Positions 775 to 23,124 of a stretch of DNA of 64,000 nt are shown here, piece by piece. The stretch covers positions 66,154,001 to 66,218,000 of the forward strand of contig OZ260661.1 in NCBI GenBank assembly GCA_965285935.1, in the 5' to 3' direction. Positions within the stretch are counted from its first letter, which is position 1; each line of letters opens with the position of its first letter. The translations under genes were made by a program, and so were the position numbers. The notes under the pieces were generated by a model. The model saw nothing but the letters and a program-made list of their open reading frames with translations, searched no databases and was not told the origin of the DNA. This DNA is from Ophelia neglecta (taxonomy: Eukaryota).

Positions 775-1522
775 AATGGGACCAAAACAAGGCTAATGAC
801 TTAAGAACAGCCATCACTAAAAACCTGTACAAATACCATCTCATTTCTGAAATGAGCGAAAAAGGCGTGAATTGGCAGGTAGATGAATTTACAAAACTAC
901 TACAGGAAGACTGCAGAAAGCATATTGGGGTCGAAAAGCAAATCTCTGTAAATGGAAGACTACCCTGGGAGTCTACCGAGTCATCGGTGCTTATGAAAAA
1001 CTTCCTCAAATGGAGGAATGTGTAGAGTGGCGCGTTAGACTCCGACCGCCAAAACAAAGAAGCCGCACACGACATGATGATGTTCTACAAAAAGGAACAT
1101 CGCAAAAGGGACAAATTCGATAGATATTTGTACCGACAAAAATCAACACGCAAACTCCTCGAATTACAAGCAAAGGATTTGCGTAAATACTGGTCAAAAA
1201 TAAACACTATAGGTAGAAAGGAATGCAACACGCCATCAGTAATCATAGGTGCGTTGACAGACCAGTTTGAGGCAGTACCCAACCCCGCAGACGCTGAAAA
1301 TTATAAACCATCAACTATTACCTAGGCCTATGTCAACAGCGAAGAGGCAAAAGAACCTAAATACCCTGAACTTGACAAGGACATCACTCTGAATGAATTG
1401 ATAAAAGCTATAGGCCTAAACCATGCCAAGAATGGTAAAGCTCGTGCCTGCTTAAATTATTCAATGGTATACTAAGCTCCGGTAGTTTCCCCAAAACCTG
1501 GACCACGGGAGAAATCTCAGCA

Positions 1523-3705
1523 TTGCATAAAAAAGGCTCTTTGACTGACCCATCGAATTACAGGCCAATCACTCTGTTAAGTACCGTGAGTAAACTATTT
1601 ACCGGAATCTTAACACGTATGTCAGACTGGGCCAAAGGCAATGATGTGCTCCTGAAGGAACAGGCGGGTTTTCGGCCAGGCTATAGCACCCTGGACAACC
1701 TATTTATTTTGAGAACACTCGGGGATAGGTGGCGGAGAAAACATAGACCCCTGTACACCTGCATGGTAGATTTTTCGCGCGCCTTCGACCGAGTAGTGCA
1801 CGAAAATGCCTGGTTCAAGATGATAAGACTTGGTATTAGAGGCAAGTTGATGGATACACTAAGATCTATGTACAAATCTGTTAAATCGGTGGTTAAAGAC
1901 TCTTTGGGTAACAGAGGCAACTCATTCAGGTGTCAACTGGGAGTTAGACAGGGGGAAAGGGCTTCCCCGATTATCTTTGCCTTTCTACTAAATGACATTG
2001 ACACCTACCTGCGTGAGAACGCTCCAGATGGGGGAGTAACATGGGAATTACTCAACACCATGATGCTCCTCTATGCTGATGACATGGTCCTTATATCCGA
2101 GTCCCCTGATGGGCTACAAGACCAGCTTAATGCGTTGGCCGACTACTGTGACACATGGTCTCTCCGCGTCAATATTTTGAAGACGAAAGTGTTCGTCTTT
2201 AAGGAGAATAAGGTGCACAGTGAGACCGATTTTTACTTTAAAGGTGACCCACTGGAAGTGGTTCACAGTTTCACATACCTAGGTACAGTCTTAGCTCCCA
2301 ATGCCTGCAGGAAAGCAACAAAGGAATATAACCTACTCAAAGCAAAAAAAAAAGCACAATATCTTCTAGATAAAAAAGTGTACTACCTTGATCTGCCAAT
2401 AAGAGATAGACTAAGGTTGTATGAATCCTGTGTTGAGTCAGTCATGCTTTATGGTTCCGAGCTATGGGGCCACGAAAGGTGTCCACAGCTCGAGGTCTTA
2501 CAGTTAGCATACATAAAAAAGCATCTACAACTCCGCACTAGTACACCGACTGACTGGCTTGTTCTTGAGATAGGTTTCATTCCCATAGAACTCAAGCGTA
2601 AACAACGCATCATTAACTTCTGGTCATCTCTATGCGACCCACGCTCGCATAAAAAACTGTCACATCTCTACTACCGGAATGCAAAACAAACAAACACAAA
2701 TGACTGGTGCAAAGGGGTGAAACAAATTCTGACTGAATACAACATGAGCGAATATTACACTCATGAAAACATTCGGTCTAAAGAATGGTTTTCTGAACAC
2801 TCCAAAACAGAGTCCACCTTGTCTTATGTACTTAAATGTTATGAAAATGTCTGTAACAGTGGTAAAGTGTCTATGTTTAAAGATGTTGTACAATACATAG
2901 GGTACCAGTATGGTGCTCATCACTTGTACTACTTGAGCAATAGTAACGCTCGTGAACTTACAAAATTCAGAATGAATAACCACTACCTAGCCACTGAAAC
3001 AAGCAAATGGTCAAGCGGCTTTAACGTGGATTGTGCCAACTGTGAGACATGTGGGGTAGAGGACAATGCTAAACACTTCATCTTAGAGTGTAACCAGTTT
3101 GAACATCTAAGGTTAAAGTATATCAATGTTTATTACAGGACGAACGCAAACGACAGAAAACTGAATGAGCTGTTTATGACGTCCGACACCCCAACACTAA
3201 GGGAGCGTTCATTATTTATGGCCGGGGGGGGGGGGTACATTTGGGGGGGGGACAGTTTTTTTTCAACCCATTTCCATGGGGGGGGGCAGTTTTTTTTCAA
3301 CCCATTTCCATGGGGGGACAGTTTTTTTTTAGTCTATTCACAGGGTGCGCAATTTTATTTAGAAATATATATTGTACAAAAGTGTGTAGTGAAACTGATA
3401 AAACTTAGCCAAATTCTGTCTTTGATGGGGGGGGGGGGCAATTTTTTTTCACCTATTTCTGAGGGGGGGGGGCAATTTTTTCCCACCTATTTCCAGGGGG
3501 GGGGGCAATTTTTTTTTGACGTACTCATTTCAAAAATTTACCACCACCCCCCCCCCCCCCCCCGGCCATAAATAATGAACGCTCCCTAAACGGCCTGGCA
3601 ATGTACTTGAAAAAAACAGGGAAAATAAAAAAAGAAACTTACAAATGTTATCAAACAATGCACGTCGAAAGCGCACATAACATAGCAAACACTTTCATTA
3701 ATTGA
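1523..3705 (+). pseudogene. LINE reverse transcriptase plus C-terminal Cys/His domain, interrupted by a MITE at 3201-3586
   Basis: The RT core has LLYADD. Removing the MITE and one TAA restores ...SDTPTL-NGLAMYLKKTGKIKKETYKCYQTMHVESAHNIANTFIN*. The end coordinate is approximate. Confidence 0.9.
3201..3586. mobile_element. PIF/Harbinger (Tourist-like) MITE, copy 1
   Basis: Perfect TIRs GGGAGCGTTCATTATTTATGGCCGGGGG...CCCCGGCCATAAATAATGAACGCTCCC; TAA duplicated at 3198-3200 and 3587-3589; internal G-run/T-run subrepeats; near-identical inverted copy at 43803-44180. Confidence 0.93.
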
Positions 3706-6173
3706 CTATTTATACCTGAATCTGACGCTTTATTCCACCATGCGCATTGCATGTGCCATGTAGTTTTGAATGTATTAATGTAAAACAGGATGTATAATGT
3801 AAACCCGAATGTATGAAGTTACCATCTATGGGATATCAGAATGGTACAACATGTTTATTCTAGTAGGCGGGAGATTTCCTTTGTACTAAAATGTTATATT
3901 TTTCATTATAATGACAACTACTGTATATATCATTATTATAGTGTGTCATTGACGGTCATGTATTATTGTATTGTATACCACTGCGAAGTTTAAAATTTTT
4001 CTGTTCACAAAAGGCGTGAAGCAGGTTGAGATTTTAACTTTTCACATATTTCTCACACTCATTCACTGTTCTTCTCTATTGGTACAAATGCAAATGTGTT
4101 AACCGTTTGTAGCTTGTAAAACCAGCTGAGGTTGAAACACAATAAAGATGATTTGATGATTTGATTATTCAGCTGAGCTCCCACTTCAAGAGTTTATTAT
4201 GTGACAACGCTGCATATTCCAGGCATGATATGGAGAACCGACCTTGGGTTTAATTCGAATCCGAATATGTTTCAATGCCACTTGGAAGAGTTAAATGATC
4301 TGTGACTATGAAGGAACCTATAATTATGTATTGTCTATAGAGCATATGTATTAAAGATATACCTTAGGTCGTAGTTAATTCACATATGCTAATTTGTAGG
4401 CTTATCTATACATGTATATATATCACTAGAAATTACCCCTGACGAAATGATTATATGGGTGACTAGGAATTAAGCAATTTAATGTAGGTTTTCCTATGCA
4501 CATATATTGCGCCCATAGCGTGGCATGGCTTTAACGGATTTCGAAGCAGGTAAGATAGTGTTTTATATAGATTTACAAAGACTCAATATTCGATTTTTTA
4601 GCGTCCTATACCCAATGTCCTTAATTTGATCAGTTCGCTGGAAAGGGATTTGAACAAATATAACGAAAGTAATAATAATAATTGTCGATGGCTATATTTT
4701 CTGGCGTAAAGGCGTAATTCCATCGCCTTGTTCAAAGCTGTTAGCATATTGAAATAATTTTCGTCGCGAAAACACTATTTGATGAAAACCATAGACTTGG
4801 CATGCACCACCCAAGCCAATGGAATCAAAGGAACCAGAACGGTTACGATGGTTCTGCAATTTGAGGGAAATATTGGTAAATTGCCGGATTAATGGTAAAT
4901 TCTTGTAGTGATTGATTGATCGCACTGTGAATCCACGATTTTAGTAAGTTATTATGTCGATACCTAGGAGAAATTGATTATTCAGGTCAATGAATTAAAA
5001 ACATTTTTTTATTCAATTTCTACCAGCACTTTTAGCCATTGTAGTCCTCCTGATACTGGCTGTAATAATCGTTTTTACTTACCTTTGGCTCCACCCACAA
5101 CCAGGACAATGCTGTGATTGCAGGTTAGCTTAGATTCATATAATCATTATCTGAATAATTTGATCTTTCTGTATTTTACATTAGTATTTTAAATTCCAAC
5201 TTGTTTTATTATTTTGCGATTTGCCTCTACATTATAGCTTTGGTGGTTTTAGTTACATGTATGCAGATTTAGTCTTATAAGAGTGCCTGCCTATTGTACC
5301 AGATTTAAAAAAAACTTTCTCGCATGCTCAAAAATTTAAATGAAATTAAGGTTTAGCATTGGTCTAAATCTTTTTATTTAGGACCAAGAAATTCATACGT
5401 GCTACCCCATTTATATACGACGACGATACCCTGAGTTTGAGCGGCATTCCTTACACAATAGCTAACCCTTACCAAAGTGGAAAATCCTCAAAATGTATAG
5501 TGCATCCGAAATATGGTGCAGGTATATGAAACTTGTTTAAAATATGAAATTAAGTAATCTGTTAATTTAATATTTGATATTTCAAAAGACTCGTCTCTTT
5601 TGTAAATGAATAGACATAGTTAGCATTCAACTTGGAAAATAATACGTTTTCGTTAATTATTTTGCTACTGAATATAGAGTAACCTTCCGGTTTTATTCTT
5701 TCTTAAAGATGGTAATATTTGGACAAGTAGAACTGCTCCTCGAGAGAATATATCCGAGCAATACTTGAAGTCAGAAAACAAAATTGATAATCACCTGATT
5801 GGAACTGTTTTAGAAGAACAACCGATCCCGTTAATCAAGAACTAGCTAGGTACATTCATATAATTATCCAAAAAGCACATAGTTTACCTAAAATTATATA
5901 GTTGTCATTTTTGTGTTTTAATGTGTCTATCTAATGAACCGTTTATTAAGTCCGTTCAACTGTGAAGCTTCGTACACTGAAACATGATTATCTTTAAGTT
6001 TTAAGCTGAAAAACGCACACCTACCAATAAAAATCCAAGACAGTGGTAAATTCTTGTTTGTCAATGTTAATTATGTGTCATACCATGTCTGGAGTAGCTT
6101 GTTGATAACATTGCTTTTATTGCAGGTCGTTTTCACAAAAGTTTCTTTATTTAAGGCCGAAAGGATCAAACAA

Positions 6174-8094
6174 ATGGCAAGAGACAAAGGCATGAACGTG
6201 TTCTCTGTTATAGCGACTGTCCTTCTGACGTACATTCTAGAAGTGAACACCTGTCCAGCAGGCTGCCAGTGTTCTCAACTAGATCCGTATTACGTGACTG
6301 TCAAATGTCTCAATGTGCAGAGATTTCCCTCCGTGAGCGATTATCCAAATTTTACCAAAGAAATACAAATTTCGTTGGTAGGTAATCCAGGGGTTCCACC
6401 GAGGGCGTTTGCCGGCTTGGGAGACATTGTATCCATTCACCTTTCTGGTGACATTGGAACCGTCAATGGAGAAGCTTTCGTCGCTATAACCACAAGTTCT
6501 TCTCGCACAGCTAGTATAACATTGTCTGGGAGAATTAACTCGATTAATACCGCAGCCTTCAGACAAAATACAGAATTCGACATTCTCAAATTTGAAGATG
6601 TGATCATAAACACAATTGAACAATTCGCGTTTGACAATTCACATTTTGTGAAAATCGAATTCATGGAAGCAACCATCAATAGAATATCGGGATTTGCATT
6701 TAGAAACACGGATCTCAGTCAAAATTTTGTGATAAAGAATTCTAGAATTAACCAAGTACAGACGTGTGCCTTCAGTGGTATCAAAAATCCGTCTATTTTT
6801 GAGATAAGATTAACCACTTTAGAAGACGTCCAAGAGTATGCTTTTGCAGATGTTACGATGAGAGTATATAGAACTGGATCAAAGACGTACGTCAGGATAA
6901 ACAATTGTACTTTTTTGTCCGTGGCTGCGACAGCGTTCATCAATATGAGGGCTGTGAGTTCCTACGAGTTTAAATCTAACATAATCCCGATACATCTACA
7001 GCTGTCCCCGGAAGGCAGCACGCCAGATTTAGTGTGTCACCAAGAGTCGTTACAACGTAAGTCCTATATATTTGCCTACTTTAATTAATAATGTCACCTA
7101 TCAAAATAAATTGACATTTTGTCCAATTTTTGATTAACCAATGAAATAATTATCAATAATAAAACAAAAAGTGATCAACAATTCAGATATTTGAAATATA
7201 GTCGTTTAACGACATTTTATTTTCTATTCAACATATAAGAATATATCAAATAATTAGGCAGCTTATTTTCCATTCTATTATTTCAGCGACTTCCATCCAA
7301 ACAACAGCTGCATTAAAGATTGAAAAGACGCCATCCTGGGAGAATACCCGTGAAACTTTGTCTGCCGGAGCGAAAACCCATGTGAACCTAGTGAGAAATT
7401 ACTCTCTTAAGTTATGCGGTTTTAAACAGGCGTCAATATTACTATTCATCGTTTTGTGTACAAATATATTTCATAAGGACCATTTCAATTGACAAAGGTC
7501 ACAACCGTATCCTTTTTGGAGAATATGACTGATATGACATCTGATGTGGGTCTAACAGCTTCTGGACAACCACCGGAAGTGACATCATCATACAATTCAG
7601 AAGAGGGCAATGCCGGAAAGTCAACTTCAGAGTCGTCGAAATTATCAACGCTATCCATAAGTAAACAACGTCAAGTAACACGTACCATTTCTTTGTATAT
7701 GTGATAATTAATCTTATCTTAGTGTCTTATTTCTTTTGTCCTTTTTAACCTTTCCCAAATGTTTTTTTTTCCAGTTCTGATAATTATGATGGTAGTCTTG
7801 CTGTTAATACTCGTCATATTAATAATAGCCGTCTTCGTGAGAAAGCAAAACATTGAGTGAGTATTTAACAAAACATAACAAACATTATTGACAATTATTA
7901 TTACGCCAAAATTAGTTTGTTTCTAACGTTAGTCTTATACGATACCCACATTATTATTTAATAATAAAAATAGTAATGATGTTTTATAGGGTACCACATT
8001 TGTGATTACTTATAAGTTTGTTTGAAATTTCAGAAGAGGAAAAATTAAACCAGAGAATCCAACTCATTATTACGTAGAAGACCCAGCTTATTGA
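6174..8094 (+). CDS. LRR-mucin type I membrane protein, paralog A (about 430 aa)
   Basis: Exons 6174-7056, 7287-7390, 7498-7660, 7775-7856, 8034-8094 (GT-AG, phases 1,0,1,2; the exon 2/3 boundaries are least certain). Signal peptide, CPAGCQC..C cap, IxxIxxxAF repeats, S/T stalk, TM IILIIMMVVLLLILVILIIAVFV, tail RKQNIERGKIKPENPTHYYVEDPAY*. An acceptor at 6125 suggests an upstream non-coding exon. AATAAA at 8194. Confidence 0.85.
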
Positions 8095-9143
8095 TAACTA
8101 TTTTAAAGTTTACTTTCATTGGTATGTAAACAAGTGGTAATTATCACAGGCGTATATTTTGACAATTTCTTTATTAGTTTAATGTTAATGACCAATAAAG
8201 GCCAATTGGCTTCTTAACTCATCTGTTTTTCTTCTTTGTTCAATCTTTTTCCAATCGATTTTGGTTAAGACAAAACTCCAAATGGTTATCTTCAAACTGT
8301 ATTTACAATAGCGTACCGAGAGGTAGGCCTATGTCTACGTTTAATACTAACTTGTCAGTTAGAGAAAGAAAAGTGTGATGTCAGTTTTAATCATTTCAGG
8401 GAAACAATGACTTATATACATCTTCTAATAAAAATGCCTCAATTAGCAAACTTTCTGCTGTTTGCATGACAAGGCAACCATTACTAAAAAAGCAAACACG
8501 GCTTATTTGTATGCCTAACGTAACCTCAACAAGTACCTAGGCCTTCTATCTCCCGTCTTACCAACGCACGTTTTAAACAAATAATAATAATTATGGTCAA
8601 CAGAATTTAATATGGAATACTATTACAATTAAGAGAAGGTCTTCTTCATACAACAATTTACAGGACATAAATGGTGGCCATTTAGGATTAATGCAAATTA
8701 CATTCAGTCGAGGACATTTGAAATCATTTCCCCGGGCCATCAGCAATACAATTAATGGGGCGAAACAGTTGAAACATAGTTGGTTTCTTATCGATATGGG
8801 ACATATGTCAAATTAGCTATGTTTGTCTTTGATAGGGTAGATCACAGCATGCACAAACCGTTTAGCAGCCTACGCTAGATTTAGCTACCTACCGGCCCAA
8901 AAGCAACTCTTCCATTGCTAAAGTTTACACGTCTAAACAAGCACTAAAAGAAGGTCACGTGGTACTTTTTACATTCAACCAGGCAAAAAAAGCTGCCAAG
9001 CGGTTGTCAAACTGTATTAAAATAATGGCCCAGTCGAGTCACGATCCCAATCATACACCATGAACTGCTCGGTTCCGGATGGTGTTCTTAATGAATTCTC
9101 CTTAACGACCAGCAATATTATTAAGAGATCAGATATAATGAAT

Positions 9144-9214
9144 CACGTGCTAATAACTTGGTCTAACGAATATCTAATAAACAGAAATCAACATGGTTTG
9201 CAGGATTATATAAG
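9144..9214 (+). promoter_or_regulatory. Candidate promoter of paralog B (E-box CACGTG + TATA)
   Basis: CACGTG at 9144-9149 and TATATAAG at 9207-9214, about 100 nt upstream of ATG 9316. Motif match only. Confidence 0.35.
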
Positions 9215-9315
9215 TGTAAATACCAATGACTATGAGGCTCTTGATGCGCTTAGAACATAAACGAGAAATTGAAGGCTCAATCTATTAGAAATTCGAAAGT
9301 CGAACAAGATTGAAA

Positions 9316-11718
9316 ATGGAGCACTTTGCTGCCTTATTGTTTATATTTTGTTTAGGTTTACATTGTTTTTCTGGTAGCAGTGCGTGTAATGAGGGTTGTG
9401 TGTGCGAGCTTGACCCTGCTGGTTACATCTCAATGTCGTGTGTCGGAGAAACTATCCCTTCTCCAATACAGAACGATGTGAAATTTCTAGTGCTTGAATT
9501 CACTAATATGAAAACCCTGCCGAGGAATGCCATCCAAGGTCTGCGCAATATGGTATACATCCAGATCGGGGGAAATATTGGAAACATCCAAAGTGGAGCC
9601 ATCACCGATATCACCGGAACAGGAAATAGCCCTAGTGAATTTCGATTGACCGGTACCATTGACAAAGTCGAGGACGAGGCTTTCGATAAAATTTCCTACT
9701 TTTCGATTTTCAAATTTGACGGCATTCTTATCCAAACCATAGAAACGTTCGGTTTTCAAAACCTGGTGATTGATTCTATGTTATTTGAGAGTTCAATTAT
9801 TCACCATATTGAGCCGTATGCATTTGAAAACGTACAAATCACAGGTGAATTCCAGATGTCGCGTACATCTATGGATACTGTACAACCATGTGCTTTCGGA
9901 GGGGTTCGAGATGCCAAGAAGTTCTTCCTAAAGTTCAGCAGCATCAGCTTCGTGCAAGAATATGCATTTGGAGGAATTACAAACATTCAAACATTCTCTC
10001 TCGAGCAGGTAATTGTTAACGGAGGCCACGAGAAGGCTCTCCAAGGTATGTCTGGAGTAAATCTCCTAAACATCTACGGTTATGGTAATACCCTGCCCGC
10101 CAGTCTGATCCATCCCGGTCTCTCCGTCACCAACATCCGGCAGATCTGTCTCGGATACAGTCCCAGCCTCAAGTTCCTTGGTAAGACCGCTGTGTGCTTT
10201 GATATGATAGTGATTCAGCTTGTTAGATCACTATTTTCTTATCTATATCAGGCCAATAAAAATCCATACATTTGTGATAACAGTTTAGGTGGATTGCCCT
10301 AGCCGTACCTATCTTACATAAATATCACATGTAGAACTCGTAAAAGCAAAACTTACATTTCCGTTTTGAACATCGTTTACAACTTCATTGCAGCTACAGG
10401 GGCACTTCCCAATTCGACTACAGGTGTTTCAGGGTTATCACTAACGACCCAGGCTGTCAGTGTTCTGCCTGTCGATTCCAATATCACAGTTTCGCCAGCA
10501 GTCAGCAGTGGTGCATCATCGGTGTGATTGCTCTTTTGTATTTTTAAAGCTATTTAGTACACACATCGGGTCTATTTTGTATTAATGTCATGGGAACAAT
10601 TGATCTTAGTAATAATAAAATGATTGTCAATAACTATAAAGATAAATTACAGTGTACTTTGAAGATTCTTTTATTAATAAATCAAAAATCACAAATTCTA
10701 AAACTCATGTATAAAGAATGAAATTAGCATTGTGAAATTTTTGTTTCGCACAAATGTCAGTCCAGTGTTTCCTAATTGATAAATTATTTAAACTTTTTAT
10801 TCAGATTTGTTCATAGGGAACATTTAAATGGGAAATGGATGTGAGGAATAACCTTTCATGTTAAATTTTCTTCAAGAAAGACCCAACACAATCTGACAAT
10901 GGGGTTGTACCAGCGGTCACACCGAAGCCATCGTTCAGCCAGACGACACCCAATCCTTCCGCCGATTATGGTACAAATGGATCCGGACAGGGGAATGGAA
11001 GTAACCCAAGTTCTAGTGCCTCAAATACAACGACAGATTTCTTCAATCATCTCGGAATTTCAGAAATCAGTAAGTCTTGGTACATTTATTTCCATTGCAC
11101 TATATACATGTAGGTTATGAATAAAATACGTATTATTTGAATATTGAGCTTTCTGGGTGATTCAATGATAGTTATTATCTGTTACCGTCTGTTTCAATGC
11201 ACGTTCAATTTCAGAGAATGTCCTTATTTGACAAACGTTCTCATAAAGCCCGTTTTAATGTTTGTTATTTTTGCCCACAGTTCTGATCATCATTTTGATA
11301 CTACTCGTTCTGATTATCATCTTGATGATTGTCCTGGTTGTGTTATATTGGAGAAAACGGTAATACAGATAACAACGTTATATGAAAATTGTTTGGATCT
11401 AAAGAAATGCAATAACTTCAGAATTTGTTGTGTTGCGTCGACTCTTTATGCTCTACTGATCCTTTTATCTCCTCAGAAGAAACAAAGTTTATCCCGAAGA
11501 AGTTCAGACGGATAAATGTAGAAATTCACCCCCAGAGCCTATCACGACAGGGGATAACCACTTTGATGCTAGAGAACCGTTTCATAGCGACACAGAAGGC
11601 AAGTTGTTCTTCATAGTCACAACTACGTAATATTTTTATTAACGATAAGAAATTCTCTGGGACTGTGAACTGTCTTCTTCTACAGGTTTTTTTTTGCATG
11701 ACAGTGCATCCTTATTAA
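9316..11718 (+). CDS. LRR-mucin type I membrane protein, paralog B (about 466 aa)
   Basis: Exons 9316-10180, 10394-10521, 10877-11069, 11281-11359, 11477-11598, 11705-11718 (phases 1,0,1,2,1). The last donor is AG|GCAAGT; without that splice the stop is at 11630. Signal peptide, CNEGCVC..C cap, LRRs, PCAFGG, NIRQIC, S/T/G stalk, TM IILIIILILLVLIIILMIVLVVLYW, tail RKRRNKVYPEE... Confidence 0.87.
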
Positions 11719-11888
11719 GTGTCTATTTCAAGTTTCGTCTATTCACTGTTTTGAAAATTAATTACAAGAAGGACATATCATTACAGAACATCTCGTTCCA
11801 AGAAAAAAGAAAAAAAGAAAATCCAAATACAAGGGAAACGGTTTTCCCGAAAATATCGATGTCAACAGTCATCATCGTGACGTCACTG

Positions 11889-12066
11889 AGCAACGGTACT
11901 AAACCAGGGTCGAGTGAAAGCAGATTAATGACAAGTAACTGATATAAAATTGCTTATAATTATCCTTAAGCCATTTTTATAGCAACGGTACTAAACCTTG
12001 GTTGAGAGTAAAAACGGACTGATGACTTTTGCTGATACAAAATCGCCTATAATCATCTTTAAGCCA
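11889..12066. repeat. Two-copy 92-bp diverged tandem duplication downstream of paralog B
   Basis: AGCAACGGTACTAAACC...TAAGCCA starts at 11889 and again at 11981. Confidence 0.8.
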
Positions 12067-13158
12067 ATTATGGGTTAAAAGTAGTCCATCATGCTTTTAT
12101 GAAATATAGGCAACAGTTTAGAATGGGTAGACAGAATTTACTGGAAATTTCTTTGTGAAATTAGTGCTAGTTTTTAACCTCAAAGGGCGTTTTTCTGAAT
12201 CAGGACCGCTAATATGATTTTAGCTCCTATGTGTTAGTTACATTTTTGTGAAATGATTTTTATCGGCAAAATTGTGTTTATAATTTTTGTGTGTGTGTGG
12301 ATATACACACACAATATGTGTGTATAGGACAATATATTTGCACGGATAAAGATTAACTTGCTACAAATATTGGGACGCCCGAGTCCATCATCAACAGCTT
12401 TCATTATTATGTCAAAAGGTTCTTATAGTGTGCAATCTATTATATAATAGTAATAATAATAATAAATCAATGAATCTCATATATGGTTTTAAAAGCACTG
12501 CATGGAAGTTTGTCATAATCTAGACCTATCTGTTATCTCAACAACAATATTGTAAAGAACACATAAATACGTTCTGAAATATAATAAATATTCAGTTATA
12601 CCTTTTAAATGACTATCTAGAACAAGTATAAAACTCCATTGCTTAACAGATAATAACATTTCACATGAATTGAAATTAAAGTAATCTCCAAGATAAAGTG
12701 TGCCTTTTGTAGAGCCTTGAAGTAATCAAGTCAGTCAGAGAATCAATAAAATTATTATTCATATCAGTTTTCTTTCGATGCCAATTTCAATCACAAGCAC
12801 TTGGTTTCTTTAAGACTGAAATCTGCAGATATGCCACTTTTCTAGCCAGTCGATCAAGGTAAATAAGCCATAGCTACCATGCGTTAGTGTTGAAGTGCCT
12901 GATCAAGGGCACGTGACTTTTATGTTCCTAACGTTCTATATGTAGTCAGCGATGACACTGTGCAACTAACTACAGTTTGTGTTGGCGGAGTAAACACTCT
13001 GCCTTTAGATCGCCAAGAATGATATATCCACATAGTTCTCATATCATGGTAGCGGACTAAGAAATAGTCAAATATTCCACTTGCTGTATGTTTTGGGGTA
13101 CTTGTTACACTGTCAGAAGAAAACACTGCGTTCTTCATTCAACACGACACCCCACAAT

Positions 13159-16100
13159 ATGAGAATCAAAATGGATTTGGACTGGTGTTTATCTAGTATT
13201 GTGTTTGCCTGCCTTTTAAAATTATCTGTCCAGCAAAGTTGCCCACAGTCCTGTGTCTGTGCTAACAATGGATATACAACGATAACATGTACTTCTTTGG
13301 ACACAATTCCTCAAATTTTGAGTGAATATAAGGGCTTATTTCTTGATTTCGCAAATAGTGTTGACATTCCAAGTGGATCATTCAAGGATTTGACAGAGAT
13401 TCGCACAATACAGTTGACCGGAACTATCGGTAAAATCGCCAAGGGAGCATTTGACAATATCAGAGCAACCGGAAGTAGTGAACTTAGAATTGCGGCAACC
13501 GTAGATATAATAGAATCTGAGGCTTTCAAAGATATTACAGGATTTCAAGACTTAAGTTTTAATTACTGTCAAATAAAAACGGTCAACTCCTTTTCATTCA
13601 AAGATGTAGCCCTGTCCAACATCGATATGACAGGCGCGATAATCACGACTTTGAACTCGTTCGCATTTGACAATGTCGAGGTGACTGTCAAATTCGAGTC
13701 CAGTACAACCTCGTTTGGTACAATTATGCCATGCGCTTTTGGCGGAATAACTGGTCCAACTGAATTTAGAGTAAGATACTCTTCCATTAACGCAACAACA
13801 AATTATGCTTTTGGAGGCATGCAGCACATTGTTTTCTTCACCTTGGAAGGTGTCATCATCAACTACGCTACCGAAAACACCCTGAAAGGAATGTTTAACG
13901 TCCACATAGACCCAGACATCCAGAATAATGGAAACACCGTCCCTGGCGACTTCAATTACGACGGAACAACTACAGCTAATGTATTGTCGAATATTAGACA
14001 GATATGTCTGAATGGTGCCCCTTCGACCACATCGACAACCACAACTACCACAGCGAAGCCAGCCACAGTGAGTACCACGACCAGCCGAACAACAACATCA
14101 AGAGCTCCCAGTACACCATCAACCACCACCTCGTCCACTGCATCCCCCATCCCATCAATAGGTAAGACCACTGTTTTTATCTAAACACTTGATGATTACA
14201 CTTTCAAAGTACCTAACATACTCAGTGTATGTGGCAGCGGTGTACAAATGCTTTTCTCGATATAAAATTTAAGTTTCTTTTCATATACCTCTACAAGCTT
14301 TTTTTCCAGTTCCTACCGGAAGTACAATAAAAAATAGCATTGTTCCAAGCAGTCAAGTTGTTGTAAGTATCAATGGTTGGTATTTTAAATAATGTTACTT
14401 GTTAGATAATCAGTTGCTTGAAAAATGTATGTTTGGTTAGTATTTAAAATCAGGAATGGACGTTTATATATAAATATATTCTTCAGGTTACAACTACAAA
14501 AACAACCACTACTAAAATACCGACCAAACCGATAGGAACCGACCCCACCATTTCCGCCTCCAAGATAGCAAAGACTACTCCGGTGACAGCGTCTCAGTCG
14601 TCGACCACAGCCAGCACAACTACCGGAAACGGAACTACCACGACAGTCAGCGGAGCAACACCCAGCTCCGGGGCATCCCTCAATAGTGAAAACAATTACT
14701 CGGTTGGATTAGCTGAAATAAGTAAGGGAAGAATTTGAATGTTTGTCGTTCGGGTAAAATTGGACATGAAGTGTTACCCAATGGAAAACTGCGATTAAGA
14801 TTAGCTATATATTGTTTTAACTGCCCTTTTAAATGCCGATGATTTTTTTATCCAAAGCAGGCTTGATACTGAGTCACTTACAAAAGCCACATTGACCTAG
14901 TTTCTGGTCAAGTCGAATCCTTTATGGAATCATCGTTAATCACACCAATGTCGGTGTCACGAAAGGTGACGGAATTACTTTGAATCAATTCAGGGCATGT
15001 TGATGTCATGTTGGAGTCATAGTGACTCACAAATGAGAGTAACAATGGGTGTCACACTAGAGTAAAAATGACCCATTTAAGTCAAAATGGCGATGTGAAA
15101 CAGTCAAAACGGGTCAGTTGAACTAAGATTCATTGAACTCAATATAGATAGGCTTGTCCCTCAACCTAAAGTCGGTTTATGCTGCATGAGAGTCTTTGCT
15201 TAAAAGTACCTCATTTTGAGTCACTCTGCTCTGGAGTAAATCATTGCAGACATATCGGATTCTTTCTTTGGATCCTGGATTTCCGATATATGAGTGTTGA
15301 AATTGACCCAAACAGTTCAGATGGGTTGCTGGGCAGGGGCAGAAGCAGGAGGAAAGGGGGGGGGGTCTATGTGCAAAAAAATGGTTTAATTTTTTAAATG
15401 GTGCAGGGAGTGTTGAAACCGGAGGGGTCAGGGGTAAGAGAAAAAGGAGAGGGGGGGGGGGGAGGTCGGGGAGGGTCAGTATTATGGGCATGCAAATAAT
15501 TGTTTTAAACTATTTTCATTACCTTTGTTGACATATAAATTTGTTTTAGGGTGAGATAAGGATGGAGCGGCAGGAAGTCATATAATCATTTTCACATTTC
15601 TGATTTCAGTGTTGATCATCATCCTGATCGTTTTACTCATTATCATAATTTTGCTGGTAGTAGTTATCATCGCACAGAAAAAGAGAAAGAGGTAGGGGTT
15701 ATGCCACAGTTATAAGCCCTAGACAACTTACCAAACGTACTTATGTCTAAATCATTTAAGGCCTTAAATATTATCCATATATCATCATAATATATAATAT
15801 TCATATGAAGACATTTCCGTGTATTATACTCAAGTATATAGTTCTTTATTTCATTTTTGTGTTTCAATGAAAGGAATTACAGAGTTACACCTACACCTGA
15901 TGGAGAAGAACCAGACTATAGCACCGGATATGACGCACGCGGTAAAGCCACTAAGCCAATCCCCGAGTCCAATGACGGACAGGCTTACTATATCAGTAAT
16001 GCTAGGGGTAGTCAAGGTAACGGCGTATTGTTTAGTTGTCACTCATTCCTTTATAAAATTGTTTATAATTAAATACAGTTGCCATATTTCTAGTTACAAT

Positions 16101-16257
16101 TTTAAGCAAGATGAGTGATTTCGTTTACTTTATTTCAGAGCACCTAGTTTCGAATAAACCTAGAAGAAAGAAAACTCGGTCAAATACGCATAAGGAAGAA
16201 CTAAGCGAGAATGGGGAAATATGGTACACTGAAACAGCCATAAACGATGACAAGTAA
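13159..16257 (+). CDS. LRR-mucin type I membrane protein, paralog C (about 544 aa)
   Basis: Exons 13159-14161, 14310-14362, 14487-14721, 15610-15691, 15874-16016, 16139-16257 (all GT-AG, phases 1,0,1,2,1, continuous frame; alternative ATG at 13171). CPQSCVC..C cap, PCAFGG, NIRQIC, Thr-rich stalk, TM MLIIILIVLLIIIILLVVVIIA, tail QKKRKRNYRVTP..EEPDYSTGYD..QAYYISN..EIWYTETAINDDK*. Confidence 0.9.
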
Positions 16258-19215
16258 AATGGAAACCACTGTATGGTGTATACAAATTATATTTAGCATA
16301 TAATATTTCTGGCTTTGATCGATTTGAACCAAACCCACATAGCATATAGGGCATATTTAAATGTATAGTGTATAAGACATTGTACAGAGAACAAATCATA
16401 AATTATTAATGGTTATATTCTATTAAAATTTTGAATCAGAGGCGAGAAGACCAAGTTGGATGAGATTGACATTAATATCAGATCTAAAATTTAGTGAGAA
16501 ATTGTAAACGCACTTATTATTCTTGATCATATGGTCTTAGAATTCGATCAGGCTCTTTGCCATTCCGTGTAGACTGAAAATAGAAACCATCAGAGCATAC
16601 ACCTGAAGAGTGGTTAGAGCTGTCTAGATGGATTTTAATCAGAGTATAATTATTCTTACCTAACCTAACTGGTGGAACACTGTAGCAAACTAGTCATTAA
16701 AAATCGCCATTATAAAATTTGGCCAAAATATATAAATATAAATATCTTTACAGTAATTTACATTTTATTGAACAAATTTCGATTTAGTAGAGGAATACAC
16801 TTGTGTGAATGTTCGGTAAAATTAATAGTCATAATTGAAGGGGTTCAAGAGCACTGTGACACGGGGACCCTAATGAGCTGCTGCCCAAAACCATGCATAA
16901 AGATTACTCGATATTATTATGGCACATATATACTTATTTGACAATGATTTCAAAGCGAGACAGTAAGCACTTCAATGCGGTTAAGAAGTGTTTCCCAGTA
17001 CGACCATCTAAAAAAGTTGATTAGGGAAAATTGGGCTCGAGTATATGCCTTGGGCCTAAAAAAATATTTTGCAACAACAAAATAGAGTACACGTCTAGGT
17101 GATCTCTTCATCGTAGGTAATGGCTGACATGAAGAACACATCGGTTTATCCATTTACAGCCGCATCTCTCTAGATTTGAAAGCAACCAGCAGTTAAGGGA
17201 TGACACAGATATATAATTTAATTAGTAATAATTTAACAATCAATATTTTGGGGGCGAATATTAATATGACCTATAGTCCTATAGAGTAGGATTGAAATAA
17301 GAAATTCCGATTGGTACCGGTGGGTATGTTTATTATCAGACATAAGGTAGTATTCAATGTGCTTGGATATCAACCTGACTTATAAGTAGGCTCAGTGAAT
17401 AGAGTCAATGAATGATGCATTCAATGCCACATTCCAGCTTTTTACAAAATTATATTTACCAAATAGCCATTTTAACTCGTGCTTCTTTTTTAAACCAAGT
17501 GCGTATATATAATTATTTATGTAATTAAAAGCTTTCGAAAATACTGAGTTTGGTTTTCCTTTTGTATCATTTCCTGGGCAGAAACATAAACACTCTTTGT
17601 TTTAATATTTGTGAACACGTTCTAGGTACATTACAAGCCGTTTCAAAAATAAAGTATCTTAAGGCAGGAAATTGATAAAATTAATGCCTTTCACTTAGGT
17701 CTAGGCATCGTCGTTGTCGTGTCAGCACAACTTATTGGCAGACATTATTGGGCTTTTACAGAATTTAGAACAGTTTTTGAATAAAATGATTTCTTCTAAC
17801 CAGCCAATAAGTGAACGCTAGATTTTGCCAATTCAGTATTTGCAATATTAATTGCAGGACATCCCACATGTGTATCGTATTTGCATGTTTCAAAACATAT
17901 CTTACACGCCTCTTTTAAATGGTGCCCAGACTATTTCCTGGTGTGCACATGGGATATTTTTTGAACAGCAGAGCACGTTAGAATGTTATAATAAGCGCAA
18001 AAACGATTGCATTTTTTTTCATTTATATTGTAAATACTCTTGAGATCACGAAATATATGCTTCGGACTTTGTGCCTAAGATGCCATAAACTGCCAAACAA
18101 GGCAGAGATTTGTCCCAAAGACCTGCAGAAAACGATCTAACCTATATATCAATATTGTGTACTTTTCTGTTAGCCCAAAACCTCTATTACACATACTTCT
18201 GGCAGGTTACAACCCTCAGTGTGTGCTCAGAAATTATAAATTTTCTCTAATTCTGTTATTGTTTATAGGTTTTAGCCGACAGATTAATATTAAAAACAAT
18301 GTGTCAATCTTAGATGCATCACTATACAGTGAAAAGACCGCCTCTATATGTATATTCAGACCTCCTGTATATGCAAATCACTTATTAATATGGAGACCAT
18401 TCTATACATTATCAATAACAAATTACCTATAAACAACCACCTTTATAACCAGACCAGCTTTTTCCAATCCTTGGGTTGAGTGCTGAAATTTCTCTCAGAA
18501 TATTAAACATACACAAAGAAGATTTCGACATGGAAACGACGATAAAAACTAAAGCATTTTTAACCTATGAATAGACTAATTGGTTAAATGATCCCCCCAC
18601 CACCTCTATCCCCCATCGCACGATCAAACCAACCCCCACCCACCAACCCCTACCCAACCCCCACACCCACCGCGTCCACCGTGTTATGAATCGGGTATAG
18701 GTATAAAATAGGAAGATTGCATCGCAAATAAGTTGTCATGCGCGCTAAGCGGCTTGCCATGCACCAGTGCCTTGCTATCCCCTTGTAGGCCCTTCTAGTA
18801 CGCAGACGGCAAACGTTCAAATATTCAAATACTGTGTAGCAGAAAGGCAAACATATCGAACGGTACTGAAAATGTCCCAGAAGACAGGTCCCAACACGTC
18901 AAACCGAGGACACGCTGATTTATTGATCTCCAGCAGGTAACTCTGTGGCAAAACAACTGTCATACCAACCATGAATGTCAATGGTGATCGGTGATCCATC
19001 CATTGTAACGTTAAGATATGAATCTTGTGAAGACAGACTCCGATCAAATTTGACTACTATATGGAATCAGTTATAATCATATTCTGAATATCAATTCGTG
19101 ATTTCAAATAATAGAAAAGGCACCTCAGGAAAGATCGATATATTGCTTAACGGCAATGGAGGAGTGGCAGTCTGGTAAAACCCACACTTTAATAATCTAT
19201 AGCGGCTTACTTCGG

Positions 19216-19258
19216 TGACTCACCTGACGAGAATGCTCCCATTAGGATCATTTATATA
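19216..19258 (+). promoter_or_regulatory. Candidate promoter of paralog D (AP-1 TGACTCA overlapping E-box CACCTG + TATA-like)
   Basis: TGACTCA at 19216-19222, CACCTG at 19221-19226 and TTTATATA at 19251-19258, about 50 nt upstream of ATG 19307. Motif match only. Confidence 0.35.
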
Positions 19259-19306
19259 CCTCCTGTTACTCATTGGATATTAAAACTCGACGGTACCTGC
19301 CAAAAA

Positions 19307-22300
19307 ATGGCACCAAGTAACATCATCCGGAATTTAATGTTTTACTGTGTATTTTTTGCTGTGTTATTTGGCCGGACTTTCTCCCAGCAGGGTTGTCATT
19401 CCTCTTGTTCTTGTGAGTATGTTAATAACAATAGTATCATGTACGTGACTTGTACAGATGTGAGAACTTTCCCCAACACGTTTCCTAGCAATACTCAAGG
19501 AATCACCATCTCCTGCATAGAGAATCCCGGGATTCCTGCAGGAGCAATGAAAGGACTCCGTAACCTCATTATCGCTCACATATCTGGAGATATCGGCGAT
19601 ATTCATGAGGGAGCTTTTGAAGACCTGACTGGTGATTTGCAAAATAACAATGGAGAGTTGGTGATTTCGGGCAATATCAAAACAATTCGGAGAGGAGCTT
19701 TTTACAACCTTAGAGATTTCACATTGGTGTCCTTTTTGTATTCCACAGTAGAAGACATCGAGAAATATGCCTTTTCATATATTCATATTAGAAAATTTCA
19801 GTTCTATAGTTCTGTTGTGAAAAATATTGCCACTTACGCATTTGATAGGATAGAAAACTTGTCTTATTTTCATATTTGGACATCTACTGTTAATGTAGTT
19901 CACCCGTGTGCCTTTGGAGGAGTAAAAAACACCGATGAATTTCGAATGTATTACTCAACTATTGACGATGTGAAAAAATATGCACTTGGGGGCATGGAAA
20001 ACATAGACACCGTGAAGATCCACGGATGTTTTGTTAAGGAGTTCGATAAATATGGATTCGCAGGATCTCATTTTATTGGAGATTACGATACTCGTGAAAA
20101 CAACATGCCAACGGCTCCGAAATTTAATGACCCGGCCGTGAATGTAAATAACATTAGGGAGAACTGTCTGGCTCTCTTCAACGGGGTGACTGCTAGAACA
20201 TCCACGCTCAGAATAGGTTCCACCGTTAGAACCTCCACCTTCAGAGCACCCTCCACCACCACGACAAGTAAGTGTTACTTTGTTTCTATAGTAACGCAAT
20301 GAGTCTGACTCAAACCCTATTGTCGTCTATGAATTAATCATTATCTACAGGCCTGTTGACCTCACACTAGACGAATGCATGCATGAATGCGTTCATTGAT
20401 TTGTTCTAAACGTTTCCATGGTTCTGCATGTCAACAGGTCACACAACTGAAAAGAAAAGGGAAATAAATGGATGCATTAACATGCCATCGTGTAATTTAA
20501 CCACCTGTAGATTAAAAATAAATGTATCTCGTATGCCGAAATTTGATATTACTGATTTTAAATTCAATGGACACAGGTTATTTGAAATTTCCGAGACCTA
20601 ATTACTACGACCTATAATTTCTCAATTATAACCTGTATGCAATTTTATATAGCAACAGTAAGACCATCTACATTAAGAGTAACTACCCCAACCAACCCTG
20701 TGGTCATCAAAACAACTACTACAACTACTCGAACACCACCTACGACAACCACTACCTCTACAACGCCAAGAACCACAACCACAACAAGGTTGACACCTAC
20801 TACAACTAAGGTAAGGTCGACTAGTACCACAACCACCACCACTACTTCCACAACGACTACTACTCCCACGCCAAGGACAACCACCACCCGTAGACCTGCA
20901 TCTACTACTACTACAACTATTGCAAGGACCAATGTACATGCCGTTGCTTCTAGTACAACATCAAGCACTACTAAAAAGACCTCTACCACCTCACAGACTC
21001 ATCCTGCTTCTGGTGGTTGGCCGGTAGGTAGCGCTGTATTTATTGCTTGGCATTTAAGGTGGCCTCCTTGTTGTGAACCTAAACCTTTCAAAGTCATGTC
21101 GATATTCTGAAATACCACGAGATGGTTCCTTGTTACTTTCTAATTTGAGAAATAAAATAAAATTAGAAGGTCCCTCATTCCGTTTCGAATAATAAGGTAG
21201 GCAATGGCAACAATAAAAGTTATATTACCAAGTCATACTAAAGCATGGGATCACCTAAAAGTCCCTTGTGCATTTTTTGTCTCCCTTATTGCTTGGAATC
21301 ATTGGACAAACAAATCGACATGGCTTCATCCGTAACAAAGTGGCTACCTATTACAAGTCAGTCTTTGCTTTGCTTTACATATATAGGCAACTCTTTCTAG
21401 AGCACATTTACTTTCAACAGTAGGGTGTCTACTTTGATACATTGCCACGCCTGCTTTTAGTTCGTCTTTTCGCAAACCTTCCGATCCAAAAGCCAGCAGA
21501 GGGCAGTTTCATCAGTGCTGGCCGGCTGTGACGCAAGCCATTTTCAATAATTGCTGCTAGACCTAGGTTTCCAAGACAGCGTCATGATGCTTGGTAGGAA
21601 GTACATGTTGGTAAAGTACATTCTGCCGAAACTAAATAGCTATAGTTATTTTCATTATTAATACCAAGAAACGCATTTTCATTACATGTAAAAGGGCCCA
21701 GGCATCGGTCATCCAGAAATAGAAGATGGAATTTGGAACGGGAATGACCCACCAACCCAAGTTACTCTCACCACCACCTCCTCTAGCAGCCAGGAAGAGC
21801 CCAACGTGGGGGCAGCGTCAGATTCCGGGGAGGACACATACACGATAGGATTCTTTGAAATAAGTAAGTCCCCTAAGCAACACTACCCTGAATAGCAGCT
21901 CTAGATTGTCCCTACACTAGCAAAATCCAATGTAAGAAAGGGAAAGCAATAGCGTGCCTATTCAGGTTAATGCAAAACTCATTGTTTACTTGAATGAAAA
22001 CTATGCATGAATAAAATGCATTTATTATGTATAGTAGAGTTGGTATGGCCGTCACATTTAAACATTAATTCATAGATCCAGTTAAGCACTAGACTTTTGA
22101 TCACATTATTTTCACTTAATTTGTAATGTGAATTAAGCAAAAGCTTACCAAAGCTTGTATGACGTGCAAGTTATCAATATTTGTCTTTATTTTTTCGATT
22201 ACTTAAACATGATAAATATTTGGCTAGAAAATAATATTCATGTTTTCGAATGCCAATACTAATGTATATTGATTCTACGGTATTTTTCAGTATTATTCGT

Positions 22301-23124
22301 CGTCATTGCCGTTATGTTCCTCATTATAATCAGCCTGATAGTGGCTGTCTTTCTGTGTCGACGGAAAAAATCAGAGTAGGTCAAAGTCACTACATTACTT
22401 TTAGTAAAATAAACCTGAAATGTGTTTACAATTGATTACATCGGGCTTAGAATGTGTTGGACTACGTAGACTTGAGTTTATAAGATATACATTAATGCTG
22501 TTAAAGAGAGAACAAGATTGATCCTGAGGTGAATGGCTTGTCCTACCACCGTCCCGTGTCCGCCATTCACGTACAGCCAGTCCAGCCCGTCTCCAGACCA
22601 AGGACGGTGAATAACTCCTACGACTATTACGGGAATACCAGTGAAGGTGAGCACTCTTACTGACCTTGTTTCGGGGGGACCTTTCTTTGGTGGTTTGGGG
22701 TTGTAAACCAGGTCAAAGTAGTATAAAAACTTACCCCAATGACCACTTACCTTAAATCTAAGCCTATAACCCATTGACTAATATTCAACTCAACCTAAAC
22801 CATCAATTAAGCCCTACCCAAACAAAATTTAAGCGTCATACTAGCGCTAAGGGGGAAAAACCATACAAATGGAGCGCCAACGGCATATTCATGTTAATAA
22901 CCGCCCCCCCCCCCCCCCCCCCAAGGCTATTGTAAGCTAAGTTAGCTTCCAATATAATGGCGAAGTGAAAAGCGGATAAGCAATATATTTCACCGAACTT
23001 ATGTTAAGTTCGTATATTTTCAATTGTAGAAGAAATAATGGATCGAAAAGCCAAGATACATCGGCAGAAAATGATCAACCTCGGGAAACCGCCCAGTGGA
23101 AAAAGAGGGGCTTCAAACTGCTGA
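19307..23124 (+). CDS. LRR-mucin type I membrane protein, paralog D (about 606 aa)
   Basis: Exons 19307-20267, 20653-21023, 21695-21863, 22291-22375, 22507-22646, 23030-23124 (phases 1,0,1,2,1, continuous frame). CHSSCSC..C cap, PCAFGG, NIRENC, very Thr-rich exon 2, TM IILFVVIAVMFLIIISLIVAVFLC, tail RRKKSEENKIDPE..SYH..NSYDYYGN..KRGASNC*. Confidence 0.9.

Follow-up and report, generated by a model that had tools for sequence, protein, structure and literature searches.

Uncharacterised leucine-rich repeat (LRR) surface proteins are numerous in animal genomes, and where their genes are clustered they are often called immune by default. A stretch of 64,000 nucleotides from the invertebrate Ophelia neglecta (contig OZ260661.1, positions 66,154,001 to 66,218,000; the whole stretch is hereafter called the window) raises the question of whether that default holds. 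On the plus strand, at 6174-23124, the window carries four intact neighbouring genes, here named g1 to g4, with heads starting at 6174, 9316, 13171 and 19307. In brief, their predicted products have a signal peptide, an N-cap with four cysteines, eight short LRRs, a C-cap with two cysteines, a Ser/Thr-rich stalk, one transmembrane (TM) helix and a tail. Are such genes fast-diversifying recognition receptors, or something older and more stable?

We suggest that the cluster probably consists of old, constrained paralogues encoding single-pass type I cell-surface glycoproteins of an unnamed family, likely adhesion or ligand-binding receptors. We regard the paralogues as old and constrained because they have 1:1 orthologues in a second species, because gene order is kept there, and because the g4 head carries an excess of synonymous polymorphism. 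Within one genome the cluster looks like a divergent expansion; the second species reveals old, ordered and constrained paralogues, and the cluster thus shows how the immune default can mislead. It comprises five genes, g0-g4, and not four as in the preliminary description that was made from the window alone: the fifth paralogue, g0, has its TM and tail exons inside the window, at 5027-5529, and its head 7.2 kb upstream of it.

Orthologues, gene order and constraint

An exhaustive HMMER list of matches scoring at least about 178 bits was dominated by giant multi-repeat LRR_5 proteins. Five short relatives, P0020, P0035, P0040, P0060 and P0066, were among the matches listed. Four of the five were traced to the ENA assembly ERZ25069296 of a related species, and P0060 is an ENA protein. 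P0066, P0035 and P0040 are located in that order on one 45-kb contig (L015/L017), which is the order of g1, g2 and g3. BLASTP paired g0 with P0020 (47% identity), g1 with P0066 (41%), g2 with P0035 (40%) and g3 with P0040 (44%), against 22-34% for the cross-pairs. In a maximum-likelihood tree each pair was recovered at 97-100% ultrafast bootstrap, and g2 and g3 were sisters at 99%. We did not find any DNA-level similarity between the two species, even in exons, indicating that they are far apart. No gains or losses were seen among g0-g3 relative to the related species.

The conservation extends to the exons downstream of the heads. In the second species (L015) every head is followed by its own TM exon, and in the g1 orthologue, the one checked, the acceptor context and the phases of this exon are as in g1. 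The stalk ends are conserved between the window and L015 (ESSKLSTLSI/ESSGLSTLAI; GLAEI/GISEI), and so are tail motifs (GYDARGKATKP/GYDARNKATKP; KPEN/KPDN). The conserved downstream exons and the 1:1 orthology date the origin of the paralogues to before the separation of the two species. The layout of head, stalk and TM helix is far beyond chance, because the same layout and the same gene order recur in another species. Judged from the sequences, this conservation of downstream exons is also the best available stand-in for RNA evidence.

The preliminary description had called the genes lineage-expanded, and had proposed a phylogeny and a synteny check in related genomes. Both were carried out, and both speak against lineage expansion: the well-supported pairs (40-47% identical) and the kept order of the three genes sharing a contig place the duplications before the split.

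Polymorphism was scored using the second haplotype in DNA contigs of the same sample. Between 19200 and 23200 the assembly differs from these contigs at 63 positions in 4 kb, a heterozygosity of approximately 1.5%. Such a value is typical for broadcast-spawning marine invertebrates. For g4, the only gene treated in this way, the 40 best-supported of the 63 differences were classified. The head has 10 synonymous and 2 non-synonymous differences, a ratio of non-synonymous to synonymous polymorphism (pN/pS) of about 0.05 (binomial p = 8e-6 against neutrality), whereas the stalk, TM helix and tail together have 4 synonymous and 7 non-synonymous differences (pN/pS 0.62, not significant). No indels were found in the g4 coding exons of other haplotypes. 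From this difference in pN/pS, the g4 head is the constrained part and under strong purifying selection, and the stalk is free to drift.

The same figures bear on the idea that the products are structural surface mucins, in which the stalk and its glycans do the work (glycocalyx, lubrication or barrier) and the head is a cap without a specific ligand. Stalks that are 31-49% Ser+Thr, reach 212 residues and are under relaxed constraint would suit such proteins. The head is, however, the most constrained part of g4, and the heads are preserved as 1:1 orthologues, in contrast to the stalks, which vary freely in length and sequence. We consider a mainly structural role improbable.

Over longer times the repeat positions differ in how well they are kept. 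At the x positions of the concave face (positions 2, 3, 5, 7 and 8) identity is 26% between orthologues and 14% between paralogues, at the convex x positions 45% and 26%, and in the core 59% and 45%. The putative binding face appears to be the part that changes fastest over long times. The g4 population data showed no sign of ongoing diversifying selection.

How do these results fit the reading that clustered LRR genes commonly receive, namely diversified innate immune receptors with LRR faces evolving fast under pathogen pressure, as in the variable lymphocyte receptors (VLRs) and clustered invertebrate LRR genes? The tandem clustering fits, as do the low identity between paralogues (only 23-30%) and the concave face as the most variable class of positions. 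Against it stand the 1:1 orthology with a distant species, the order kept for three genes on one contig, the lack of gain or loss among g0-g3, and the strong synonymous excess in the g4 head. The specific subfamily moreover has only seven genes in the genome, and its products lack TIR, death and Ig domains as well as any charged TM residue through which they might associate with an adaptor carrying an immunoreceptor tyrosine-based activation motif (ITAM). Orthology, stable order, small family size and purifying selection weaken the immune-diversification reading, and we regard it as unlikely. The divergence noted in the preliminary description is in line with the variable concave face; a fast diversification is not supported by the g4 head.

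Gene models, protein layout and related genes

The exons of the five genes, all on the plus strand, are as follows; percentages are comparisons with the second species.

5027..5123 (+): g0, predicted TM exon; a hydrophobic open stretch with acceptor and donor in the family phases, 1 then 2
5382..5529 (+): g0, predicted last (tail) exon; acceptor in phase, motif DDDTLSLSGIPYT, stop at 5527-5529
6174..7056 (+): g1 exon 1, signal peptide, N-cap, eight LRRs and C-cap cysteine; LRR_5 E 1e-16; donor AAC/GTAAGT, phase 1
7559..7660 (+): g1 exon 2, short Ser/Thr-rich stalk; 50% over 26 residues to L015 2581-2658
7775..7856 (+): g1 exon 3, TM helix; 54% identity to the TM exon of the orthologue, same acceptor context CAG/TTCTGA
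8034..8094 (+): g1 exon 4, giving with the end of exon 3 a tail of 25 residues that ends in KPENPTHYYVEDPAY and a stop; KP(E/D)N stretch kept in L015
9316..10180 (+): g2 exon 1, head; ATG at 9316, LRR_5 match, 40% identity to P0035
10394..10455 (+): g2 exon 2, small stalk exon, phase 1 to 0; GT-AG model
10877..11069 (+): g2 exon 3, stalk with the juxtamembrane end motif GISEI; GT-AG model and motif comparison with L015
11281..11359 (+): g2 exon 4, TM helix; conserved relative to the L015 TM exon
11477..11630 (+): g2 exon 5, most of a tail of 55 residues, with FDAREP and the stop; 3' end less certain
13171..14161 (+): g3 exon 1, head and start of a Thr-rich stalk; 44% identity to P0040, LRR_5 match, modelled by AlphaFold (see below)
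14310..14362 (+): g3 exon 2, small stalk exon; GT-AG model
14487..14721 (+): g3 exon 3, stalk ending in GLAEI; conserved relative to L015 11321-11455
15610..15691 (+): g3 exon 4, TM helix, 82 nucleotides as in g1; acceptor TTTCAG/ at 15610 gives an open frame
15874..16016 (+): g3 exon 5, tail with the motif GYDARGKATKP...YY; 39% over 33 residues to L015 11797-11895
16139..16257 (+): g3 exon 6, tentative last exon; best in-phase acceptor, to which the related species gives no support
19307..20267 (+): g4 exon 1, head; LRR_5 E 3e-22
20653..21023 (+): g4 exon 2, long Thr-rich stalk; GT-AG model
21695..21863 (+): g4 exon 3, stalk ending in GFFEI; acceptor weak
22291..22375 (+): g4 exon 4, TM helix; GT-AG model
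22507..22646 (+): g4 exon 5, tail with ...NSYDYYGNTSE; GT-AG model
23030..23124 (+): g4 exon 6, end of the tail with the stop, at the end coordinate given in the preliminary description

All predicted introns are of the GT-AG type, and the predicted open reading frames (ORFs) are uninterrupted over 375 (g1), 450 (g2), 540 (g3) and 606 (g4) residues. The predicted intron phases are 1,0,1,2 in g2 and 1,0,1,2,1 in g3 and g4, as proposed earlier; g1, which has four exons and lacks the small second exon, departs from that series with 1,1,2. Gene g2 starts at the ATG at 9316 and not at the bacterial-code TTG at 9310. A TM-exon acceptor at 15550 in g3 was rejected due to an in-frame stop. Reading through g3 exon 5 to a stop near 16070 gives an alternative 3' end for this gene. 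The models are least certain at the g2 and g3 3' ends and at g4 exon 3, whose acceptor is weak. The g0 tail exon is 59% identical over 17 residues to a stretch that the related species has at the corresponding place, upstream of its g1 orthologue. An apparent EISK motif at the stalk ends is partly splice donor, SK being encoded by GTAAG; the conserved motif proper is G-h-x-E-I.

None of the public runs covering the stretch is an RNA run. The only coverage comes from DNA contigs of one sample, which are continuous over the introns and have no splice joints, and the splicing given here is therefore predicted. We rejected a protocadherin-like arrangement of alternative first exons on common constant exons, as in both species every head comes with stalk, TM and tail exons of its own. 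Between 21478 and 21611, inside the predicted intron 2 of g4, contig depth in each of the three DNA runs climbs from about 25 to 1,500-6,100, the mark of a very high-copy short repeat resembling a short interspersed nuclear element or a miniature inverted-repeat transposable element.

Domain and database searches were made per exon, and the joined models were used for reading-frame checks only. The four heads g1-g4 align over their full length at 23-27% identity. Invariant in the alignment are the four N-terminal cysteines (C-x3-C-x-C-x9-12-C), the second repeat G-x-I-G-x-I-x-x-G-A-F, the repeated A-F pairs and one C-terminal cysteine. All four heads match the Pfam model LRR_5 (PF13306, the BspA/TpLRR repeats) above its curated cut-off of 27.7 bits, with 61.3 (g1), 46.9 (g2), 42.1 (g3) and 79.5 bits (g4). 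Only g2, with 29.8 bits, reaches the cut-off of LRR_8 (27 bits); the other heads score 16-23. The LRRNT and LRRCT models gave no matches to the heads at E up to 1. The cysteine pattern of the N-cap is present by alignment, and the C-cap has only one conserved cysteine after the repeats.

Registered on the A-F pair (positions 18-19), each head has eight repeats of 21-24 residues with the consensus h-x-x-F-x-F-x-x-(G/S/A/T)-x-I-x-x-I-x-x-x-A-F-x-(G/N/D)-h. Position 9 is G/S/A/T, and the Asn of the classical ladder is absent. By sequence the repeats are of the Asn-less TpLRR/BspA type and not of the VLR/GPIb type, and we did not find the LRR_8 match in all heads, the Asn at position 9 or the four-cysteine LRRCT of classical extracellular LRR proteins. 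The cysteine of the xCAFGG motif is present in g0-g4 and their orthologues; the conserved cysteine of the capping helix probably bonds to it.

The stalks of g1-g4 have 34, 94, 146 and 212 residues and are presumably O-glycosylated. Each predicted TM exon (79-85 nucleotides) encodes a single, very hydrophobic helix of purely Ile, Leu, Val, Met, Phe and Ala, without a charged residue. The tails have 25-92 residues and carry conserved Tyr-containing motifs, [YF]DAR.K..KP...YY. The stalk and tail exons matched no Pfam family at E up to 1, and the term non-catalytic therefore stands as far as domain libraries tell. TIR, kinase, death, Ig and seven-transmembrane (7TM) domains were not found by Pfam in the heads or downstream exons of g1-g4.

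Much of the preliminary description thus holds. The head alignment, the LRR_5 scores and the ordered stalk, TM and tail exons bear out four same-strand genes of one architecture; the CxxxCxC..C cap is invariant; each head lies in a single long open exon (6174-7056, 9316-10180, 13171-14161, 19307-20267); and TIR and kinase domains are absent, together with 7TM or any other Pfam domain beyond the repeat models. Two statements need adjusting. The count of about 8-9 LRRs of 23-24 residues becomes eight of 21-24, plus caps. The cysteine described as xCAF(G/S)G recurs in g0-g4 and the orthologues, as xCAFGG, and is absent from the paralogues on chromosome 2.

These paralogues came from a search of the 762-Mb assembly to which the window belongs; the window DNA itself contains no N. 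The search placed the g0 head at G000:C1:66146787-66147575 (L005), and the two g0 exons in the window are 5027-5123 and 5382-5529. Two related heads were found on contig 2, the chromosome-2 paralogues, as well as longer single-exon LRR_5 ectodomains of 430-720 residues and one of 2,239. Several of the longer ectodomains have the cap and the G-x-I-G-x-I second repeat in common with g0-g4. With a profile built from g0-g4 and the two chromosome-2 genes, the tight subfamily consists of these seven genes, scoring 335-400 bits; the next scores are at most 144 bits. The seven genes and the orthologues P0020, P0035, P0040, P0060 and P0066 share a CPxxCxC cap, the second repeat (S/T)GxIGxIxxGAF, 8-9 Asn-less repeats and a cysteine after the capping helix; the head is a single exon ending in phase 1, followed by a stalk, a TM exon (phase 1 to 2) and a tail.

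The chromosome-2 branch, L006 (G000:C2:19.67 Mb), L008 (G000:C2:26.80 Mb) and P0060, has one extra repeat of 24 residues. In place of the xCAFGG cysteine it has cysteines elsewhere (INCLGG, SCHV), pointing to a different capping disulphide. L006 and L008 stem from a duplication later than the split from the related species. Among the longer paralogues, L009, L010 and L011 (G000:C1:67.54 Mb, C5:101.5 Mb) and P0045 have 640-720 residues and about 25 repeats in a single exon. In L009, L011 and P0045 the C-terminus is a Thr/Pro-rich stretch followed by a short hydrophobic end, resembling a glycosylphosphatidylinositol (GPI) anchor signal and not a TM helix with a tail, a design nearer to VLRs than that of the window genes. 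The related species also has an uninterrupted ORF of 2,662 residues, P0001 (L016:4586-12574; ERZ25069296, ctg18318). The first 250 residues cover the head profile in full, signal peptide and cap included, and are followed by 17 more LRR_5 stretches. P0001 is a giant member of the wider family, and the 2,239-residue ORF at G000:C9:43936150-43937811 in the genome of the window is comparable.

Between the g0 head and the g0 TM exon lies a frameshifted non-LTR retrotransposon, a long interspersed nuclear element (LINE), at 97-3568 (+). It includes an Exo_endo_phos_2 endonuclease piece (97-771) and an RVT_1 reverse transcriptase in an open stretch of 710 residues (1439-3568), and has probably lengthened a g0 intron beyond 11 kb. 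Open stretches rich in GGG(Q/N)FF and PPPPP recur at 43729-44179, at 55766-56094 (both strands) and at the 3' end of the LINE (3169-3568), and are probably a dispersed repeat family.

Could the genes be silent or decaying copies, or an ORF artefact of repeat-rich DNA, or, as a variant, BspA-like genes transferred from bacteria or protists? The missing RNA coverage leaves room for this, and by summed score the strongest profile matches are giant LRR_5 proteins, mostly from metagenome or raw-read assemblies. Decay sits badly with four multi-exon models that are all open with canonical splice sites, with g4 coding exons free of indels in other haplotypes, and with purifying selection on the g4 head and conserved orthologues. 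Transfer sits badly with the metazoan-type N-cap and the introns, and animal receptors are the best single-domain matches in both sequence and fold, ahead of TpLRR (6mlx, Z 12.2) and BACOVA_01565 (Z 13.1). We rejected pseudogenes, given the open frames and the constrained g4 head, and recent bacterial transfer, given the introns, the metazoan cap and the animal best matches; decay, artefact and transfer together are very unlikely.

Predicted fold and possible function

An AlphaFold2 model of the g3 head, from a 12-sequence alignment, has a mean predicted local distance difference test (pLDDT) score of 83, with residues 30-240 exceeding 90. The modelled chain is a regular solenoid, and the helix that closes it (residues 269-280) carries the conserved cysteine. 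In a VIA-align search of 48,161 chains the top four matches were all the thyrotropin receptor TSHR or the follitropin receptor FSHR: TSHR 3g04_C (Z 17.8; root-mean-square deviation 3.5 over 217 residues), FSHR 1xwd_F (Z 17.3), and in third and fourth place FSHR 4mqw and 7t9i (both Z 16.4). Nogo receptor-2 (Z 15.3) and a C. elegans LGR (Z 14.6) came next; the Bacteroides LRR_5 protein BACOVA_01565 (Z 13.1) and TpLRR 6mlx (Z 12.2) were weaker. Foldseek gave generic LRR matches, the first being Nogo receptor, NGL-3, LGR5 and chondroadherin; the highest template modelling score (TM-score) was that of the TSHR ectodomain, 0.58 by target, at rank 49. The preliminary description had proposed AlphaFold and Foldseek as a check; this produced a solenoid, and matches to generic LRR proteins only, at modest TM-scores.

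The ESM Atlas search by shape returned thyrotropin-receptor clusters (TM 0.52-0.60), outscored by arthropod LRR_5 clusters (0.62-0.64); in the search by language-model features "Thyrotropin receptor isoform X3" scored 0.92. An ESM Atlas search excluding the classical LRR families gave weak, unrelated rows only. In a PDB sequence-profile search LGR5/LGR4 were best (E 7e-27), and ALS, LRRC15, TLR13 and NGLs also ranked above TSHR (2e-13). Judging from the model, the resemblance to TSHR and FSHR appears to be a real likeness in shape, that of short Asn-less repeats and low curvature.

Is the likeness also one of descent? The heads might be membrane-tethered kin of the glycoprotein-hormone/LGR ectodomain that bind cystine-knot or similar ligands as decoys or co-receptors. 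The TSHR and FSHR structures at the top of the fold list, LGR5/LGR4 at the top of the PDB profile list and the thyrotropin-receptor clusters of both ESM Atlas searches, which have the same Pfam LRR_5, all point that way. Identity is, however, low (17-20%), Nogo receptor, chondroadherin and NGL trail by a small Z margin, and many unrelated LRR proteins score alike by profile. The hinge region and the 7TM domain are absent, and the likeness may only mirror the low curvature that short Asn-less repeats bring about. Common ancestry of the heads with the LGR ectodomain is possible but unproven, and we hold a role as tethered kin to be doubtful. Equally speculative is a bolder version, in which the genes form an undescribed conserved invertebrate family whose head is truly related to the glycoprotein-hormone/LGR hormone-binding domain and is carried on graded mucin stalks with a single TM helix; the five paralogues would bind different secreted (e.g. 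cystine-knot) or surface ligands and signal via tail tyrosines.

If the cluster consists, as we favour, of old and constrained adhesion or ligand-binding receptors, the solenoid of eight Asn-less repeats would be a rigid binding paddle, weakly curved like the TSH and FSH receptors. Each paralogue would display its head at its own height above the membrane, set by a stalk of 34 to 212 residues, and would bind its own conserved partner via the variable concave face. The paralogues may act as adhesion molecules or ligand-binding co-receptors. Any signal would pass via the tail tyrosines, which could recruit adaptors, or via an associated protein.

Several points count against this reading and should be kept in view. 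The joining of the exons, the 3' ends of g2 and g3 and the very expression of the genes are all deduced from genomic sequence. The polymorphism test concerns g4 alone and used 40 of the 63 differences, those with the best support. Even between orthologues no class of positions is less conserved than the concave face, which would suit a changing ligand no less than a constant one. In the model comparison TSHR/FSHR lead the other LRR folds by no more than about 2.5 Z units, and by sequence profile LGR5/LGR4 and generic LRR proteins score better than TSHR.

The interest of the cluster lies in its repeat type, its TSHR/FSHR-like shape and its conservation as a five-gene cluster. TpLRR/LRR_5 repeats are familiar above all from the surface proteins of bacteria and protists and from vertebrate hormone receptors, and here they build a single-pass, mucin-stalked family in an invertebrate. 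Should ligands be found, the heads would provide a compact binding scaffold shaped like the TSH/FSH receptor head, and the paralogues a test case for stalk length tuning surface recognition.

Comparison with known systems

Searches by HMMER, by fold, in the ESM Atlas and in the literature gave no named family for g1-g4, in agreement with the preliminary description, which had recognised none. The proteins traced as subfamily relatives carry no source names and no Pfam family beyond the repeat models, and we found no description in the literature of an LRR_5-mucin-TM family in invertebrates. Word-indexed protein searches gave no relatives, being limited by 5-residue words and length and probably by Ser/Thr-rich words; HMMER did find relatives.

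The closest system by fold is that of the type A LGRs TSHR and FSHR, together with LGR4/5. These have in common with the window genes a Cys-clustered N-cap, low curvature and short irregular repeats (about 9-10) matched by LRR_5, and TSHR/FSHR are the best fold matches to the g3 head (Z 16.4-17.8), a resemblance in fold only. The LGRs continue into a hinge and a rhodopsin-type 7TM domain; in the window genes a mucin stalk and a single TM helix take their place, the head is in one exon, and identity is only 17-20%.

GPIb-alpha and the GPIb-IX-V complex come closest in overall design, with an LRR head, an O-glycosylated stalk, a single TM helix, a short non-catalytic tail and several paralogous type I LRR proteins. 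GPIb-alpha has Asn-ladder repeats and an LRRCT disulphide loop, whereas the window genes lack the Asn ladder and close the head with only a two-cysteine cap, a helix with one cysteine. GPIb-alpha also has an anionic sulphated-Tyr region before its macroglycopeptide. The LRRCT loop and the sulphated-Tyr region define GPIb-alpha, and with no LRRCT found the window genes do not belong to it. GPIb chains are absent among the PDB matches listed, and no sequence relationship beyond generic LRR was found.

Lamprey and hagfish VLRs are alike in having a small LRR head with an LRRNT and a Thr/Pro-rich stalk, and are weaker matches (E 1e-5; Z 13.1). They differ in somatic cassette assembly, an LRRCT and a GPI anchor; the window heads are germline-complete in one exon, TM-anchored and evolutionarily stable, and a VLR-like cassette assembly was rejected. 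The preliminary description had likened the genes to VLRs and GPIb-alpha. The overall design bears this out; the Asn-less LRR_5 repeats, the lack of an LRRCT and the best structural matches, TSHR and FSHR, do not.

Among other animal proteins, LRRC15, NGL/LRRC4, Nogo receptor, chondroadherin and LRRTM have in common with the window genes an LRRNT-capped extracellular solenoid, and give significant HMMER and Foldseek matches. Their repeats are of the 24-residue Asn-ladder type, with an LRRCT and no such mucin stalk. None is orthologous, the best identity being about 15-20%, and 1:1 orthology to these named LRR proteins, the finding that the preliminary description had said would speak against it, was not found. 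Toll-like receptors have a cytoplasmic TIR domain; the window tails, of 25-92 residues, match no Pfam family at E up to 1.

The BspA-like and TpLRR proteins (Tannerella BspA, Treponema TpLRR, Trichomonas TvBspA) have the same repeat class, LRR_5, with the pattern ...I..I...AF.... A Pro/Ser-rich linker, a TM domain and a short cytoplasmic tail are further features of many TvBspA proteins (PMC2843621). Unlike these, the window genes have a metazoan four-cysteine N-cap, phase-conserved introns and animal receptors as best single-domain matches. The cluster is an unnamed variant within a known kind, the extracellular LRR type I membrane protein, and not a new kind of system.

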